Part shown: positions 1 to 61,110 of the stretch, piece by piece | Numbering within the stretch: position 1 is the stretch's first letter | Layout of the letters: every line of letters begins with the position of its first letter | Assembly: GCA_937625935.1 (NCBI GenBank) | Contig: OW569370.1 | Location: forward strand, 1 to 64,000 | DNA from: Tetramitus jugosus | Taxonomy: Eukaryota > Protista > Heterolobosea | Reading direction: 5' to 3' | DNA: 64,000 nucleotides | The notes under the pieces: model-generated | The model's database searches: none | Seen by the model: only the letters and a program-made list of their open reading frames with translations | What the model was told of the DNA's origin: nothing | Translations under genes and position numbers: made by a program

Positions 1-887
1 CCAAACCCAACCCAAACCCAAACCCAAACCCAAACCCAAACCCAAACCCAAACCCAAACCCAAACCCCAAACCCAAACCCAAACCCAAACCCAAACCCAA
101 ACCCAAACCCAAACCCAAACCCAAACCCAAACCCAAACCCAAACCCAAACCCAAACCCAAACCCAAACCCAAACCCAAACCCAAACCCAAACCCAAACCC
201 AAACCCAAACCCAAACCCAAACCCAAACCCAAACCCAAACCCAAACCCAAACCCAAACCCAAACCCAAACCCAAACCCAAACCCAAACCCAAACCCAAAC
301 CCAAACCCAAACCCAAACCCAAACCCAAACCCAAACCCAAACCCAAACCCAAACCCAAACCCAAACCCAAACCCAAACCCAAACCCAAACCCAAACCCAA
401 ACCCAAACCCAAACCCAAACCCAAACCCAAACCCAAACCCAAACCCAAACCCAAACCCAAACCCAAACCCAAACCCAAACCCAAACCCAAACCCAAACCC
501 AAACCCAAACCCAAACCCAAACCCAAACCCAAACCCAAACCCAAACCCAAACCCAAACCCAAACCCAAACCCAAACCCAAACCCAAACCCAAACCCAAAC
601 CCAAACCCAAACCCAAACCCAAACCCAAACCCAAACCCAAACCCAAACCCAAACCCAAACCCAAACCCAAACCCAAACCCAAACCCAAACCCAAACCCAA
701 ACCCAAACCCAAACCCAAACCCAAACCCAAACCCAAACCCAAACCCAAACCCAAACCCAAACCCAAACCCAAACCCAAACCCAAACCCAAACCCAAACCA
801 AAACCCAAACCCAAACCCAAACCCAAACCCAAACCCAAACCCAAACCAAAACCAAAACCAAAACCAAAACCCAAACCCAAACCCAAA
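1..887. repeat. Terminal telomeric array (CCCAAA)n / (TTTGGG)n with proximal CCAAAA variants
   Basis: Nearly uninterrupted CCCAAA hexamers from base 1 to 887, with the C-rich strand at the 5' end as expected at a left chromosome end. CCAAAA variants at 798-803 and 846-869. Confidence 0.97.
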
Positions 888-4860: not shown

Positions 4861-5041
4861 GACCACTCGCTCACGCGACGATTGATGAAAGAGGGGACAA
4901 GAGAGAGGTCGTACCCATCTGTTACTAGCCAATCCAAAAGCTCCAAGTTTCCAGACTCGTTACTCAATTTTGAGTTCAATCATATTTTTTTTATTGTTTT
5001 TCTCTTTTTTTGCCCTTGTTCATAAACATAAATTCTAGACC

Positions 5042-5705
5042 TTAATTATTTATTAAGCCCTTAATAAAGTATCTATTGTATCCAAACTTGTACTGTGGAG
5101 CAGTAGGCACCTCGTATCCCAATTCTTTGGCAGCACGAATTGGCCAGTTAGGTTCTCTGAGCGATACACGACCAATGAGAACAAGATCAGCCCTCTTATC
5201 TTCAATAAATTTGTTTGCCTTCACTGGATCAGTAATCAAACCAACAGCTCCTGCCAGCACTCCTACTTCATTCACCACTCTCTCGGCGAATGGAACTTGA
5301 TAATTAACGAACTGAGCAAATGCTTTCACCCTGGTGTTAGCTCCAGAAGAGCAATCAATGAGATCAACACCGACATCTTTCAACAATTGAGAAAGCTTGA
5401 CGTGATCATCAACAGTCCAACCTTCTTCGACATAATCCGTAGCAGACAATCTTGTGAACAGTGGTAACTCATCAGGAATGGCAGCTCTAACTCTCTCACA
5501 AATTCGTACAATCAGTCTAGTTCTGTTCTCAAAGCTTCCTCCATACTCATCTGTCCTAAAGTTTGACAACGGGGAGTAAAAGTTGTGTAGCAAGTAACAT
5601 TGGTGCAATAGCAATTCTATTCTTTAGTGTGCGACCACGAATGGTCAATGGAGTGAATAGAGCAGGCACTTGTTTTTCTTGTTGAAGTTCTTGTTGTGCA
5701 GTCAT
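5042..5705 (-). pseudogene. Old Yellow Enzyme (NADH:flavin oxidoreductase, YqjM/NamA-like) pseudogene with an internal deletion
   Basis: ATG at 5705 gives MTAQQELQQEKQVPALFTPLTIRGRTLKNRIAIAPM, the OYE N-terminus. It is joined out of frame at ~5597 to YLLHNFYSPLSNFRTDEYGGSFENR...DLIDCSSG...ADLVLIGR, the OYE C-terminal half. Confidence 0.9.
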
Positions 5706-6149
5706 TGTTGTTTTCTTGTGTTAGGGTTAAGTTTTTCTTTGTTGTTTTGTTGTTATTTGTTCTTGGACTATGCAAGAAGCAATTTTAAAGGTGGCAAATT
5801 GTGCGCAATCGACCACCTTTTGCCACCTTCTGGAAGTTAGGACATTCGCTGCGGAAGACAGAAGCCACGACATTCGTTCAAATGCGGGTATCGGTATTAA
5901 GTATTTAACACTCAGTTACCGGTCACTTACGGAAGCATGATTGCACACAATTGGGAGAGCTTCGATCACGCGTGACAATGGCCAAAAATACAACCGATCA
6001 TGATCCGAGTATGACAATAATTATTAATCGACAAATGAAAAGGAAAAGATCAAATATGTTGACAACGATGATGCGTCTTTCAATTCTTGCCCCATGAAAT
6101 TCGATGGAAATCTTCGACAGTCAATCGATTTGTGTACCAGCATTTTGCC

Positions 6150-6270
6150 TTTATTGAAATGATACATTGAACCTTTGGAAACAAATGGCACATTCCAACT
6201 AGTCTAGAGCCCCAGTAGGGTTAGACATATAATGCCGTAGGCTGGCAAGGGAATCTATTGACTTCCACTA
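6150..6270 (-). ncRNA. Putative Fanzor omegaRNA (scaffold plus flank-derived guide)
   Basis: Lies directly 3' of the Fanzor stop. Four consecutive stems (GGAAgTC/GATTCC, TGCC/GGCA, GTCTA/TAGAC, TTGGAA/TTCCAA) and a possible AGCCU:AGGUU pseudoknot ending at 6170. Confidence 0.45.
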
Positions 6271-6276
6271 TTACAC

Positions 6277-7243
6277 TTACAAAGGAACTTGATCAATATG
6301 TTTCTGGCAAGGCATCACATGGCGCAACAAAACAACCAATCCATGATCGATTCCATGATTTGTCGGAACCTGTAATGGGACCACGTGCACATCTGACTTG
6401 CAGTCTTGCTTCGAATTTTTCGCTCTCCTCTTGATCATCGTAATTCTCACACAAGTACTTACTGATCTTGTGATGGGCATCCTTGACTTCTTCAGCATCG
6501 CTTTCCTCATGTTCTGTCTCTTCTTATGATTGAACTCATAGGCTTGACTTTCCTTTTTCTGGTTCATTTAAATCTTGTCTGCCCGATACAGATGTTTGAA
6601 GATTCGATCCATTCCTTTACTGCCAAACTCGATGGAGGATCCATCGGTAGCATAACCAGTCATGAAGGCCCTCACTCCAGGATCTAAAGACATGACATTC
6701 TTAAAGGTGTTTGGCACTTCCTTCAGTTTGTCTAACGGCTTCAACATGATGACATAGAATCGACCAATGGAGTCCTTGATAATTCTAGTGTTATACTGGA
6801 TGTCAACTGGAAATTTGCTCTTGGTTTTGATCTCTCTGAGCCAAGAAGCACTTCCATCATCATTCCAGTGTCTGTAGCGAAGAAGGATTCTGTCAATTTC
6901 TTCTTTTTGCTCTTGAATTTCATTTGAAACATCGTCACCTCTGCAAACACCTTAGCCTTTAACGCCTTTCCTTTCAAGCCCTGAGCTCTCAGTCTGACCT
7001 CTGCTTTCTGTAACTTTTCCTTGTGGACTTTCAGTGCTTGTTGGGTTTCCACGTCTTGTCTTCCTGTTTTTTGAGCATAAACTTGTTATAAAAGTCAACA
7101 CATTGGTTATACACCCAACGATAAATTCCCATCCACTGATTCAATTTCTTCCTCTCTTCATTGTTGGGATACAATCTTATCTTCCAGGCTTTTACAACCT
7201 CAACTTTCTTACGAGCCTTGGTAGTGACCCTGTTCTTCTTCAT
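6277..7243 (-). pseudogene. tnpB: Fanzor2/TnpB RNA-guided endonuclease pseudogene
   Basis: Read across frames: KAWKIRLYPNNEERKKLNQWMGIYRWVYNQC (N-terminal HTH_OrfB-like), FQMKFKSKK, GRFYVI, VMSLDPGVRAFMTGY (RuvC-I, Asp codon 6682-6684), VKDAHHKISKYLCENYD, RKIRSKTASQMCTWSHYRFRQ, VLLRH. In-frame TAA at 6568-6570, several frameshifts. RuvC-II Glu segment, Zn finger and RuvC-III are not found. Confidence 0.9.
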
Positions 7244-7500
7244 CGCCTCGAGCCTCTCGTTCTTCTTCTCTTATTTTCTGCAGCACGTCGTCCACTATTT
7301 CTTGCAACGAACACACTGATGACTGAGAGGGCTTTGGACAATTCATCTTCTGATGAAGTTTGCCCTGCTTCATCTTCACTGTGAATCAGCAATTTTGTTT
7401 GAAACTTTGGGTAGATTTGTTCAAGTAATTGGTATCCAAATCGACACAGTCTGTCTTTGCGCATGACCACAGTTTCTGAGACAAGCTTTTGAATCGTTGC
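7240..7500 (-). pseudogene. tnpA: IS607-type serine recombinase (TnpA), C-terminal remnant
   Basis: ATIQKLVSETVVMRKDRLCRFGYQLLEQI...SEDELSKALSVISVFVARNSGRR matches the IS607 resolvase DRLxRFG and EELxxDLLxIxxVFSARxxG pattern. In-frame TGA upstream at ~7505; HTH and catalytic YARVS not found. Confidence 0.85.
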
Positions 7501-7873
7501 GAATCATGCAAGAGAGGGTTGAGAAGCAAAAACTTAAAAGACAATTGAAGAGGAAAAGGGAGTTGGAAAAAATGTGGGAAAGCTATCAAACCACCTTCAG
7601 AGTAACAGGTTTTGGTTTTCCTTTCTGACAGTGTTTTGTCTAAGCTAAGATGGTTTTAAAGCATTTTACGATGTTGCAGAATCCGATTGTATGTAAAAGT
7701 AGCAGAGGACAATGTTGAAATTCCAACGAACTCAATCAATGCTGAATGATATCCCTTTGTTTGTTAAAGCTTCTTTGTTGAATGTGAATAAACAATGCTC
7801 AGCCACGGACTCAGTTTCGACTGTGTTTTTATCGTGAATTCACATACTCTACACACTGCTTTCTTGGCACATA

Positions 7874-8722
7874 CTAGACCGTTTCCTTTTTTCCAACACC
7901 TACCACAATCGCCGCGTTGTTCTCTTTGCCGTTTTTCTCTGCCTGTCTGAAGAATTCTTCCTCTCCTAATTCAGAAAACTTCTGTGCTGGGTTGCTCAAC
8001 CACTTTTCCCAATGAGCTTGGACTCGAGAAACCTTGTATCCTGCTGCTGTCATTGTATTGCCTAGAAGCATTTCATTCCAAGTGTACAAATGGTTGTTCT
8101 TATCATGTGGAACCCATATCTGTGGGTTTGATTCATGTTTGACAGTAACCACAAGAGTTCCACCTTCTTTCAGTTTGTAATAGAGTCTTCTCAACTCTAG
8201 TACTGGATTTTCCACATGTTCAAGGACCGATGTTGTAACAACGATATCGATACTCTCATCTGGTAGATCTTGGCTATACTTTACGAAAGTGATATCTGGA
8301 TAAGTCTTCGCCGCTTCTTCACGAGCAATATCATTCAACTCCACACCATATTTTTGACTACATTTCTTCATGTTGGCTATGACAGCTCCAGACGAACTTC
8401 CGAACTCAGCACACACAGCTCCTTCCTCTACATAATCTCTCCAGTATCTTTGTTTGAATTTACCACCAAATACGTTCAAACTTCTCTGCCAAGCATAGTA
8501 TTTTGAATCATAATGAGTAACACTAGTCGATGTGTCGTCCCTTTGAGTGGCTGCAGCATCTTTCAGGTTGTTCAACTGCTTCTGTAGATGTCCAATTTCA
8601 TCCTTGAGGGAAACTGTTTGGTTTTTTCTCCAAAGAGAGATTGAGAAGAGCAAGAAGATTGTAATTAGAGCTGATGCTACAATGAGCAACACTGGTTGTC
8701 TTTTGAGGGTTAGATGGTTCAT
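7874..8722 (-). CDS. Type II membrane class I SAM-dependent methyltransferase
   Basis: N-terminal signal anchor and coiled stem, motif I variant CAEFGSSSG, YGVELN, DIVVTTSVLEHVENP...LKEGGTLVV. Single exon. Confidence 0.85.
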   Translation of the reverse strand: MNHLTLKRQPVLLIVASALITIFLLFSISLWRKNQTVSLKDEIGHLQKQLNNLKDAAATQRDDTSTSVTHYDSKYYAWQRSLNVFGGKFKQRYWRDYVEEGAVCAEFGSSSGAVIANMKKCSQKYGVELNDIAREEAAKTYPDITFVKYSQDLPDESIDIVVTTSVLEHVENPVLELRRLYYKLKEGGTLVVTVKHESNPQIWVPHDKNNHLYTWNEMLLGNTMTAAGYKVSRVQAHWEKWLSNPAQKFSELGEEEFFRQAEKNGKENNAAIVVGVGKKETV

Positions 8723-58746: not shown

Positions 58747-61110
58747 TTAGATAGGCGATCGAAATGTTGGAGATTTTGGTTTCGAACTGGGAGAAGCAGG
58801 ACTATTGATAGACGTTAGAGACAAGTCAGATGTCAAGTTCATGGAAGCTCGTTTGTTGACTGGTGAAGCCCAATAGCGAGAGTGACCCGTGCCTCCATTC
58901 ATAGATGACAACTTGACTGTTTCCCATTCGGCTGGTGAAATTCCCTCCTTCTCGAGCTGAGTAAGAACCAATTGTTTCATCTGGGCTTCGTCAATAACAT
59001 CAAAATTCAATGAATCAATAATCTTCTTCGCTCTTTGTACGAGAAGCTTATGACTCATTCTTCGTTCATACAATACACTTCGATCTTGTTTTTGATCTTC
59101 TCTATTAACTTTTTCTTCTATTTCACTCATCAACTGAAGTCTCTTAAATGTTTCTACTCGCTTTAATCGCTCAATATTCTCCAAGCGATCAGATTTCTTA
59201 AGTTTTTGTTCCTCCATTCTCTTTTCGAAAGCCTTTTGCTTCTGGAACAGGAGTTCTTGACAGATTTTGTCATTGGTTTCCCTCTTGTTTCTTATTTCCT
59301 CAATCCGTTTCTCTTGTTCCACCTGAGCTTTTTGAATACTAATCTTCCTACGCGACTCTTTAATTTGTTCCTGTGCTTTTTGTTTTGCAGCTTCATCCCT
59401 TTTCTTTTCTTCCAATTCTCTCTTCTTTCTCTCTAACTCCTCATGGCTATCCAAAATTCGGTTTACTTTCTCCTGTACATGACTTTCAGCTTTCCTCTTT
59501 GCCGCTAACAATCTCTCTTCTTTGATTTGAGATCTGGTCTGGATTGATTCCCTTAACATCTTCTTCCTATTTTCCTCAAACTCTAACTTCTTTTGCTCCA
59601 CTTCCTTAAGCTTCTGTTTTAGGGCGAGTGACTTCTGTTTCTTCATCTCTTCGGCTTGAAAGAATTGTCTTGACTTCTCTTCGTTATTCTTTTTTAATTC
59701 TTCAATGAATTGTTGTTGTCTCTCTTGAGTTGCTCTAATCTTCTGTTCAACATACTGATCTTTCATTTCGAGCTCGGCTTTTCTTTTCTCAATATCTGAT
59801 TGATGATTCTCTTTTAGCCTCTTTTGTAATTCTAACGTCTCCATATGTCGTTTATGTCTCACGTATTCAATTTTCTTGGCTTCCTGTTCCTTCTCGTTTC
59901 TCAACCTTTCTTCTCTTTTTTGAGCCTCTTCTAACTTCTTCTGTCCCTCCAGCTCCTTTTTCTTTTTCAATATCTCTGCATTTAGGAGTGCTTCGAAAGA
60001 GGACACCGATTGCTGAAGAGACTTATCTAAGCGAGATATCTCTTCCAATTCTCGAGCAATAGACGTTGAATTATCTTTAGTATCCATAAATGTATTATTC
60101 TCTTGGTCATCCATCAACCTCTGACGTTCTTTTCGAACTGAGAGCAGCTTCTCCTTTCTCTTCTGCTCGTTGTGCGCCCATCTCATTTTTACGATATTGT
60201 CTGCAACTCCTCTCGCACAAAAATTCTCCTCAGGTCTATATATTAATTCTTTAGCAGATACTCCTAAATTCATACAAGCTTCAATAGATCTAGGACTTGT
60301 TAAAACAATCCGTTGATTTTGATTAAATTGATTAAAGTTGTCCAAGTTCAAGTTAGGATCGTCTAGTTGTAGCTTCATACCCTGAGCTTCGAGGCTCTCT
60401 TTGAGAGATACTGAAGGCTTCGAAGGACTCTGTACTGAACGAGAAAGAGGAGCAGAGAGCGGCCTACTGGGACTCTTTCTCAAGAACTTATTCTCAGCTG
60501 TAGCAGTATTGATCGTTTTTGTTGGAGTCGCATCGAAGCTCTCTCTTCTTTTTGGTGTTCTGATGCTTTCACCCGGAGTTTTACTTCGTTCACTTCTTTG
60601 TTGGATCGTACTCGATGGTCGTGTAACAAACGAAGAAGTTTTTGGTTGTTTGATGGAATTCTTTTGATGAACGAGAGATATTCGACTGGGAGGTCTTCTC
60701 ACATTCGAAACTGGTTTTGTGTGATTCTCACTTTTGAGATTATGAGTAGTTACATTCTTCCCTCCCGTAGAATCTCTACCAGAGAGAAAGCCAAAATTTA
60801 AGCGAGGAACAACTAGTTTCTGTTTCTCGATTGCCTTTGATGTATTGATTCGTTGCACTTCCTCGTCGACATCTGAATCGTTATCAGACTTGGAAGAATA
60901 CCGTTCCCCATCATCATCAGAGTTTTCTTCTTCATCATTCTCTTCTAAGGAGGGAATCTTCTCTTCTTCTTCATGTGTATGAGTGCAACTGTATCGTAGG
61001 TTGTTCACATCATTCTTCATTTGATTGAATTGTCCCATTGGCATAAAATTGTTATCTGCTCCTTCCACAGAACTAACAGAGTCTATCATCAAGGAATTGT
61101 GGGAGCTCAT
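58747..61110 (-). CDS. Long coiled-coil protein with LTSPRSIEAC..LGV..EL motif
   Basis: 787-aa ORF with an E/K/R/Q-rich charged helix. The TSPRSxEAC motif is recalled from uncharacterised protist proteins. Confidence 0.75.
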   Translation of the reverse strand: MSSHNSLMIDSVSSVEGADNNFMPMGQFNQMKNDVNNLRYSCTHTHEEEEKIPSLEENDEEENSDDDGERYSSKSDNDSDVDEEVQRINTSKAIEKQKLVVPRLNFGFLSGRDSTGGKNVTTHNLKSENHTKPVSNVRRPPSRISLVHQKNSIKQPKTSSFVTRPSSTIQQRSERSKTPGESIRTPKRRESFDATPTKTINTATAENKFLRKSPSRPLSAPLSRSVQSPSKPSVSLKESLEAQGMKLQLDDPNLNLDNFNQFNQNQRIVLTSPRSIEACMNLGVSAKELIYRPEENFCARGVADNIVKMRWAHNEQKRKEKLLSVRKERQRLMDDQENNTFMDTKDNSTSIARELEEISRLDKSLQQSVSSFEALLNAEILKKKKELEGQKKLEEAQKREERLRNEKEQEAKKIEYVRHKRHMETLELQKRLKENHQSDIEKRKAELEMKDQYVEQKIRATQERQQQFIEELKKNNEEKSRQFFQAEEMKKQKSLALKQKLKEVEQKKLEFEENRKKMLRESIQTRSQIKEERLLAAKRKAESHVQEKVNRILDSHEELERKKRELEEKKRDEAAKQKAQEQIKESRRKISIQKAQVEQEKRIEEIRNKRETNDKICQELLFQKQKAFEKRMEEQKLKKSDRLENIERLKRVETFKRLQLMSEIEEKVNREDQKQDRSVLYERRMSHKLLVQRAKKIIDSLNFDVIDEAQMKQLVLTQLEKEGISPAEWETVKLSSMNGGTGHSRYWASPVNKRASMNLTSDLSLTSINSPASPSSKPKSPTFRSPI

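Follow-up and report, generated by a model that had tools for sequence, protein, structure and literature searches.

The region at 6266-6146 on the minus strand of the window (the whole stretch of DNA that was analysed, 64,000 nucleotides) is most probably the fossil right end of a degenerate, single-copy IS607 transposon with a TnpA recombinase and a Fanzor2 nuclease, in which the omegaRNA scaffold persists as a non-functional relic. The kind of Fanzor2 element is already known, and the locus itself is a fossil of known type. As a by-product, the comparison with relatives yields a model for a compact omegaRNA (~120 nt) of Fanzor2, featuring four helices, a likely pseudoknot from loop to terminus and AAGGCG as its terminal motif. 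A family right end fixed to the base and at least one apparently young relative (P0151) present in several contexts could guide work on small eukaryotic RNA-guided nucleases.

The window is the beginning of contig 27 of the eukaryotic assembly that was searched (26.35 Mb, 56 contigs). A telomere tract, CCCAAA (TTTGGG), occupies window positions 1-887 at the start of the contig, and the element resides ~5-7 kb from the chromosome end. The locus includes three main features:

Positions 6146 to 6266, minus strand: omegaRNA scaffold homologue (H1, H2, H3, H4 and 3' tail), the right-end region of the element (covariance models R1 and R2).
Positions 6255 to 7243, minus strand: Fanzor2 pseudogene (PF12323, family profile and comparison with the relative L036).
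Positions 7240 to 7491, minus strand: C-terminal remnant of an IS607 serine-recombinase TnpA, KDRLCRFG...VFVARNSGRRAA (tblastn with the TnpA of the relative L132).

An earlier note, made from the letters of the window alone, had claimed a dead Fanzor2 at this site, and the claim holds for an IS607 element, since pieces matching PF12323 are present, catalytic parts are lost, a TnpA remnant lies just upstream and, among solved structures, mimivirus ApmFz2 (9B0L, E 8e-26) comes closest to P0008, a full-length relative. PF12323 (HTH_OrfB_IS605) matches the pseudogene piece at 7243-7031 with an E-value of 1.8e-11, and the RuvC-I motif SLDPGVR is intact, with HHKISKYLCENYD coming next in a different frame. 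A profile of full-length relatives matched five pieces at the locus, while its last ~65 positions (430-496) are absent. For mapping deletions, the pseudogene was aligned to L036, the closest relative spanning the whole gene (61% DNA identity). This alignment gave ~10 deletions of 2-100 nt, mostly frameshifting, the larger ones not being multiples of three. At 6439/6438 a loss of 35 nt removed the ILLPxF region, and at 6313/6312 a loss of 100 nt took the rearranged catalytic Glu (ExYTSKTC), the CxxC zinc finger and the RuvC-III DRD; in the family alignment A2, D437, E584 and D619 are invariant. Among the features expected of a Fanzor2, the locus thus retains the HTH and RuvC-I, and the Glu, the zinc finger and the RuvC-III Asp are missing. 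Judged from its sequence, the local ORF is a Fanzor2 pseudogene by descent that would encode no working nuclease.

Aligned with residues 153-228 of the 286-aa L132 TnpA, a PF00239 ORF, the recombinase remnant shows 60.5% identity (tblastn, E 3e-24). It is located upstream of and co-directional with the Fanzor gene, the two joined by an ATGA stop/start overlap, as in an IS607 element, and the N-terminal half of TnpA is absent at the locus. The segment 7600-7243, which resembles the start of the 636-aa P0008, was also considered as an N-terminal extension of the Fanzor and rejected, as tblastn assigned it to the TnpA remnant, read in a different frame. A left end of the element was looked for in the window and not found.

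When the RuvC-I piece was searched exhaustively with HMMER, 285 relatives were returned at E <= 0.001, and DNA was then retrieved for many of these; single ORF pieces searched against viral contigs gave no relatives. The relatives with 3' non-coding ends homologous to 6266-6146 form an IS607/Fanzor2 family of metagenomic and giant-virus-like contigs. One of them, P0151, is an identical 635-aa ORF on 20 contigs with at least four unrelated right flanks, and its copies agree in every base as far as ...TTTAATAAAGGCG / ...AATAAAGGCG, immediately beyond which they have nothing in common. In L035, L049, L050, L036 and L133 the 3' non-coding region closes with this terminal motif too, and the sequence after it is again unrelated; between L036 and L133, which are close relatives of each other, divergence begins immediately past GGCG. 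In the window, the counterpart of this family terminus is AATAAAGGCA at 6155-6146 (minus strand). Because it matches the terminus where the copies of the relatives diverge, homology places the right end of the element at 6146, with 6147 as the alternative should the final A belong to the flank. This last base, the one oddity of the scaffold sequence, is A in the window and G in 12 of 14 relatives, and may represent either a mutated terminus or flank. As the window element is single-copy, its boundary was derived from homology and from full-length model matches, rather than from a comparison of its own copies. Two further features follow from this boundary:

Positions 6146 to 6153, minus strand: 3' tail UAAAGGCA, in which AGGC at 6150-6147 is the likely 3' strand of the pseudoknot (homology boundary).
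Positions 6126 to 6145, minus strand: would-be guide, 20 nt of flank (AAAUGCUGGUACACAAAUCG), deduced from the corrected boundary.

The right end had been predicted at ~6170-6173, with CAAUGUAUCAUUUCAAUAAA (6169-6150) as the guide. Neither prediction stands, as the homology-defined end is located 25 nt further, at 6146, and the proposed guide is conserved scaffold that includes the 3' arm of H4. The alignment of copies that had been suggested as a check was run on relatives, and similarity stops at the site equal to 6146 and not at the predicted ~6170. The earlier end was misplaced because there are two AAAGG motifs 25 nt apart, of which the inner one had been chosen. An omegaRNA boundary drawn from a single sequence is thus unreliable, and only the comparison of copies could pick between the two motifs. 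With regard to the GG core at which IS607 elements recombine, a GG is found at 6149-6148, two bases inside the boundary, and the CG that comes next is constant across independent insertions, its C being paired in the pseudoknot model.

The relatives themselves show diverse arrangements. P0151 occurs in at least three left and at least four right flanking contexts (contigs L039-L048 are among its carriers) and looks young and mobile; its left and right flanks appear in mixed combinations, which may reflect assembly through a repeat, and the tnpA frame of L039 includes an in-frame stop. In the diverged relatives L035 (3949-4782), L039 (717-1499) and L049 (276-1097), two frames are open over the same ~270 codons, with 0-2 stops in these two frames versus 13-16 in the third. 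The overlapping frames correspond to a full IS607 TnpA (48% identical to the L132 TnpA) and to an N-terminal 'extension' of the Fanzor, and the Fanzor ORFs called in these contigs measure 635-647 aa. The overlap is either a long genuine gene overlap (overprinting) or a gene-call artefact. In the subgroup of the window (L036, L132), the Fanzor is short, at ~410-430 aa. The metagenomic L132 (144-2211) is a compact IS607 unit in which the end of a 286-aa resolvase-type TnpA overlaps the start of a 410-aa Fanzor2, and its scaffold is the nearest to that of the window in H2 and H3. One family contig, L038 (IMG/VR GVMAG-S-1059906-7), is labelled as giant virus, and L035, a contig of 72.7 kb with N6/N4 methylase and protein kinase genes, is giant-virus-like. 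The presence of family members in such contigs fits a viral route into the amoeba genome.

Within the scaffold, the comparison with relatives gives the following helices:

Positions 6250 to 6266, minus strand: H1 hairpin, GGAAGUC/GAUUCC with loop AAUA (sequence and counterparts in relatives).
Positions 6233 to 6247, minus strand: H2 hairpin, UGCC/GGCA with loop AGCCUAC, in which GCCU at 6242-6239 is the likely 5' strand of the pseudoknot.
Positions 6202 to 6226, minus strand: H3 hairpin, GUCUA/UAGAC with inner stem CCC/GGG, CCC-TACT-GGG (covariation).
Positions 6154 to 6198, minus strand: H4 outer helix, UUGGAAUG at 6198-6191 with CAUUUCAA at 6161-6154 (covariation).
Positions 6187 to 6182 with 6169 to 6165, minus strand: H4 inner hairpin, CAUU(U)G/CAAUG, enclosed by the outer helix.

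The scaffold lies on the strand of the nuclease and overlaps the 3' end of its ORF, as expected of an omegaRNA, and the TAG at 6257-6255, which is the ancestral Fanzor stop, falls inside the H1 hairpin. The proposal of an omegaRNA-type scaffold at the end of the ORF is upheld, with homology to relatives and no large deletion. The motifs listed earlier are all present on the minus strand, at 6266-6250, 6247-6233, 6226-6202 and 6198-6175, with AGGTT at 6174-6170. The first three stems (H1, H2 and H3) recur at the same positions in relatives, and H2 and H3 do so with compensatory changes. The fourth, TTGGAA (6198-6193) with TTCCAA (6180-6175), is paired in 56.8% of cells, which is the level of the slid controls and a value reached by 135 of 500 shuffles; TTCCAA was the wrong partner, and in the family TTGGAATG (6198-6191) pairs with CATTTCAA (6161-6154).

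Folding of the window sequence on its own at 6168-6272 (minus strand) gave a minimum free energy of -23.9 kcal/mol, where shuffled sequences averaged -24.0 (z = 0.04), so that the stems first proposed are, by themselves, no better than chance. With 301 nt of context the z-score was -0.63, and z-scores were not significant on either strand. A search of Rfam with positions 5000-8000 returned no relevant match.

Comparative models were more informative than these single-sequence folds. MAFFT alignments put hairpins of differing sequence out of register, and a two-sequence seed model followed by realignment was used instead. The seed model, R1, was made from L131 and L132 only and contains H2, H3 and the outer and inner helices of H4. 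Its best match in the window spans 6248-6146, is full length and ends exactly at 6146 (26.2 bits, E 1.5e-4). The same model finds L039, L049, L036, L035, L133 and L050 at the expected places, each match ending at GGCG, and the score of the window compares with 17-31 bits for elements with intact nucleases. The second model, R2, was made from seven relatives with the window left out, and gives this site 38.9 bits, with an E-value of 5e-5 when the window is searched and of 0.02 when the 26 Mb genome is, the only match genome-wide. Based on these scores, the scaffold looks complete in both sequence and pairing. H1 is outside the R1 match and was added by eye from analogous hairpins in relatives, a hairpin being seen at its place in L131, L132, L036, L133, L039, L049, L050 and L073; the 5' limit of the scaffold is thus presumably H1.

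Both models also gave a weak full-length match at 60939-61051 on the plus strand, scoring 14.5 and 16.7 bits (E 0.13-0.57). Many of its positions are unpaired, and we take it for chance.

In the 8-sequence alignment, 91.1% of the cells are paired, compared with 35-46% when partners are slid by 1-3 columns, and compensatory changes are found in 18 of the 33 pairs, compared with 3-7 in the slid controls; the alignment behind these counts had been fitted to the model, so that they lean towards structure, yet the gap to the slid controls is large. For four out of five measures none of the 500 shuffles reached the observed value, while for the count of further pair types 42 of 500 did. H3 is paired in 100% of cells, with compensatory changes in all five pairs (5/5), and its inner stem is CCC/GGG in the window, CUC/GAG in L131 and cleanly deleted in L132. 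In H2, 4/6 pairs have changed on both sides, and the stems vary among relatives (UGCCU/AGGCA, CGCCU/AGGCG, CUGUC/GACAG, CCCA/UGGG, AACCA/UGGUU). The two helices of H4 (helices 4 and 5) are 90% and 87% paired, with compensatory changes in 7/12 and 1/6 pairs, respectively. As far as can be judged from aligned sequences, the covariation of H2, H3 and H4 is strong. The covariance-model check suggested earlier thus came out in favour of the scaffold, as R1 and R2 both find the window and H2, H3 and H4 co-vary when set against the slid controls.

The pseudoknot needs to be treated with more reserve. The earlier note had paired the loop of the second hairpin with a terminal AGGUU; the loop and the principle of a pairing with the 3' terminus are retained, and the conserved partner is instead AGGC at 6150-6147. 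The pairing GCCU:AGGC was the sole consensus helix obtained de novo by RNAalifold from a sequence-only alignment of eight family members. That only the pseudoknot emerged from this MAFFT alignment is explained by the hairpins being out of register. The pairing is kept in 8/8 sequences, and a GC-to-AU double change in L132 with a GU intermediate in L131 represents one independent compensatory event. When the 3' tail was used in a longest-complement search, matches were common by chance in single sequences, and the pseudoknot was not isolated. We consider it likely that the loop GCCU pairs with the terminal AGGC, a rating helped by the structure of ApmFz2, the omegaRNA of which forms a pseudoknot with its last bases, nucleotides -4 to 0 (PMC11832414). 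Longer pseudoknots seen by eye in the distant L103, L055, L073 and L134 are only suggestive, as complements of the tail are common by chance.

Since the conserved region is at the same time the end of a transposon and the end of a gene, it could mainly represent a right-end DNA site for TnpA or an mRNA 3' end signal (AATAAA), with the helices being incidental. IS607 ends carry recombinase binding sites, and AAUAAA is found within the terminal motif. We nevertheless find this improbable as the main explanation, as compensatory changes in four helices are the signature of RNA or single-strand structure and not of a protein-binding DNA motif, and the layout, from ORF end to right end with the last bases in a pseudoknot, is that of the ApmFz2 omegaRNA, which has been demonstrated by experiment. 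The two kinds of role can coexist.

The earlier note had further observed that the stems look preserved while the ORF has decayed, and had suggested that the locus may supply a guide in trans to an intact Fanzor elsewhere. Against ~10 deletions in ~1,250 ancestral bases of the ORF, the 121-nt scaffold has none larger than 5 nt. With ~1 deletion expected in 121-125 nt, the probability of none is ~0.35; such sparing would be expected about once in three and is not meaningful, and it provides no evidence of selection. Searches of the assembly by DNA, ORF pieces, Fanzor2 profile and RNA model gave no second copy of the element, and a cognate competent Fanzor2 was not found elsewhere in the assembly by family profile, ORF pieces or DNA. 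The genome does contain at least 27 other TnpB-like genes with open frames of ~650-685 aa on many contigs (e.g. C34:437820, C4:106309 and C8:613761; L005-L028). These are Fanzor1, their only solved match being SpuFz1 (8GKH, E 4e-14), and are ~21% identical to the family of the window. The guide-target check was run in the genome with the corrected guide (6145-6126), and only its own flank matches; there is no second perfect or near-perfect genomic site, and the other matches have 3 mismatches, near the control level.

A scaffold kept by selection, with a guide that serves in trans an intact Fanzor from another locus of the genome, would account for the difference in deletions between scaffold and ORF, and it would agree with the fact that every family helix can still form, with an R1 score within the range of elements with intact nucleases and with the many intact Fanzor genes. 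We regard it as very unlikely, because the assembly holds neither a further Fanzor2 of the family nor a second scaffold, the intact Fanzors are distant Fanzor1 with scaffolds of their own, the sparing of 121 nt is readily obtained by chance, and the guide matches its own flank only.

The assembly is an incomplete census, as the DNA runs contain a second, diverged fragment of the element that is outside it. This is a 768-nt contig resembling 7132-7190 and 7494-7553 (with 6 and 3 differences, respectively), in which 123 other letters replace 303 and the sequence past 7132 is unlike that of the window; it is more degraded than the window element and absent from the assembly. Additionally, the depth of the DNA runs is doubled at 7475-7608.

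With regard to transcription, the only RNA run, a soil metatranscriptome, covers just 5800-6096, without the scaffold, and the three runs of the organism, with even depth and long contigs, look like DNA. There is a very slim chance that the relic is still transcribed and can be taken up in trans by a Fanzor2 of this family that arrives with a giant virus during infection or with a newly entering IS607 element. If this were true, the dead copy in the host would direct the foreign nuclease to the subtelomeric flank of the host itself, or act as a decoy.

Least credible of all is that the stems are chance features of an ordinary 3' flank without omegaRNA homology, which would suit the single-sequence folding, the lack of an Rfam match and the failure of one in four stems and of the proposed pseudoknot partner in the comparative test, but models from which the window was left out pick precisely this site, at full length and ending at the family terminal motif, and sequence motifs and helices are common to at least seven relatives.

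We thus read the locus as the fossil right end of a degenerate IS607 element, and by analogy with ApmFz2 and TnpB, its original functioning can be tentatively outlined. In living relatives, the stretch would encode a compact omegaRNA scaffold of ~120 nt with the four helices H1-H4, in which the H2 loop GCCU and the final AGGC would form a pseudoknot adjoining the guide. The transcript would continue beyond the transposon end, so that the next ~20 nt of flank would become the guide, and with this guide Fanzor2 would cleave the emptied site or target site adjacent to a TAM, a short motif that the nuclease requires next to its target. In the window, the scaffold appears complete to 6146 and the would-be guide would occupy 6145-6126, while the nuclease has lost its catalytic Glu, zinc finger and RuvC-III Asp. 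As the nuclease is dead, TnpA is truncated and the assembly has no cognate Fanzor2 elsewhere, the scaffold has most likely lost its function and remains as a relic that escaped the deletions by chance.

Among known systems, the closest is ApmFz2 of Acanthamoeba polyphaga mimivirus (gene L79; PDB 9B0L), which belongs to the same nuclease clade and to an IS607 element with TnpA upstream. The omegaRNA of Fanzor2 occupies the interval from the end of the ORF to the right inverted repeat, past which the guide is located (PMC10530073), and the window element resembles ApmFz2 in having its scaffold between the ORF end and the right end, a guide that would derive from the flank and a probable pseudoknot of the last bases. 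The scaffold measures ~120 nt in the window versus 205 nt in ApmFz2, and the likely 5' strand of the pseudoknot is in a hairpin loop ~95 nt from the end in the window versus ~190 nt in ApmFz2. In contrast to ApmFz2, the nuclease of the window is dead and the element is single-copy in a cellular genome. The Fanzor1 genes of the same genome (at least 27, SpuFz1-like) are likewise RNA-guided TnpB-family nucleases with the scaffold at the 3' end, but represent a different clade (~21% identical, 8GKH nearest) and are multi-copy, and R2 matches none of them. For the bacterial TnpB omegaRNA, the accepted role is the cutting of the emptied donor site (PMC11832414, PMC10530073). Like this RNA (reRNA; ISDra2 and IS607-family TnpB), the scaffold in the window originates where the nuclease gene has its 3' end and the transposon its right end, its guide would follow directly after the end and its pseudoknot would adjoin the guide. 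It differs from the bacterial TnpB systems in sequence and helices, which are unrelated to any Rfam family, in its eukaryotic or giant-virus context and in the rearranged catalytic site of the Fanzor nucleases.
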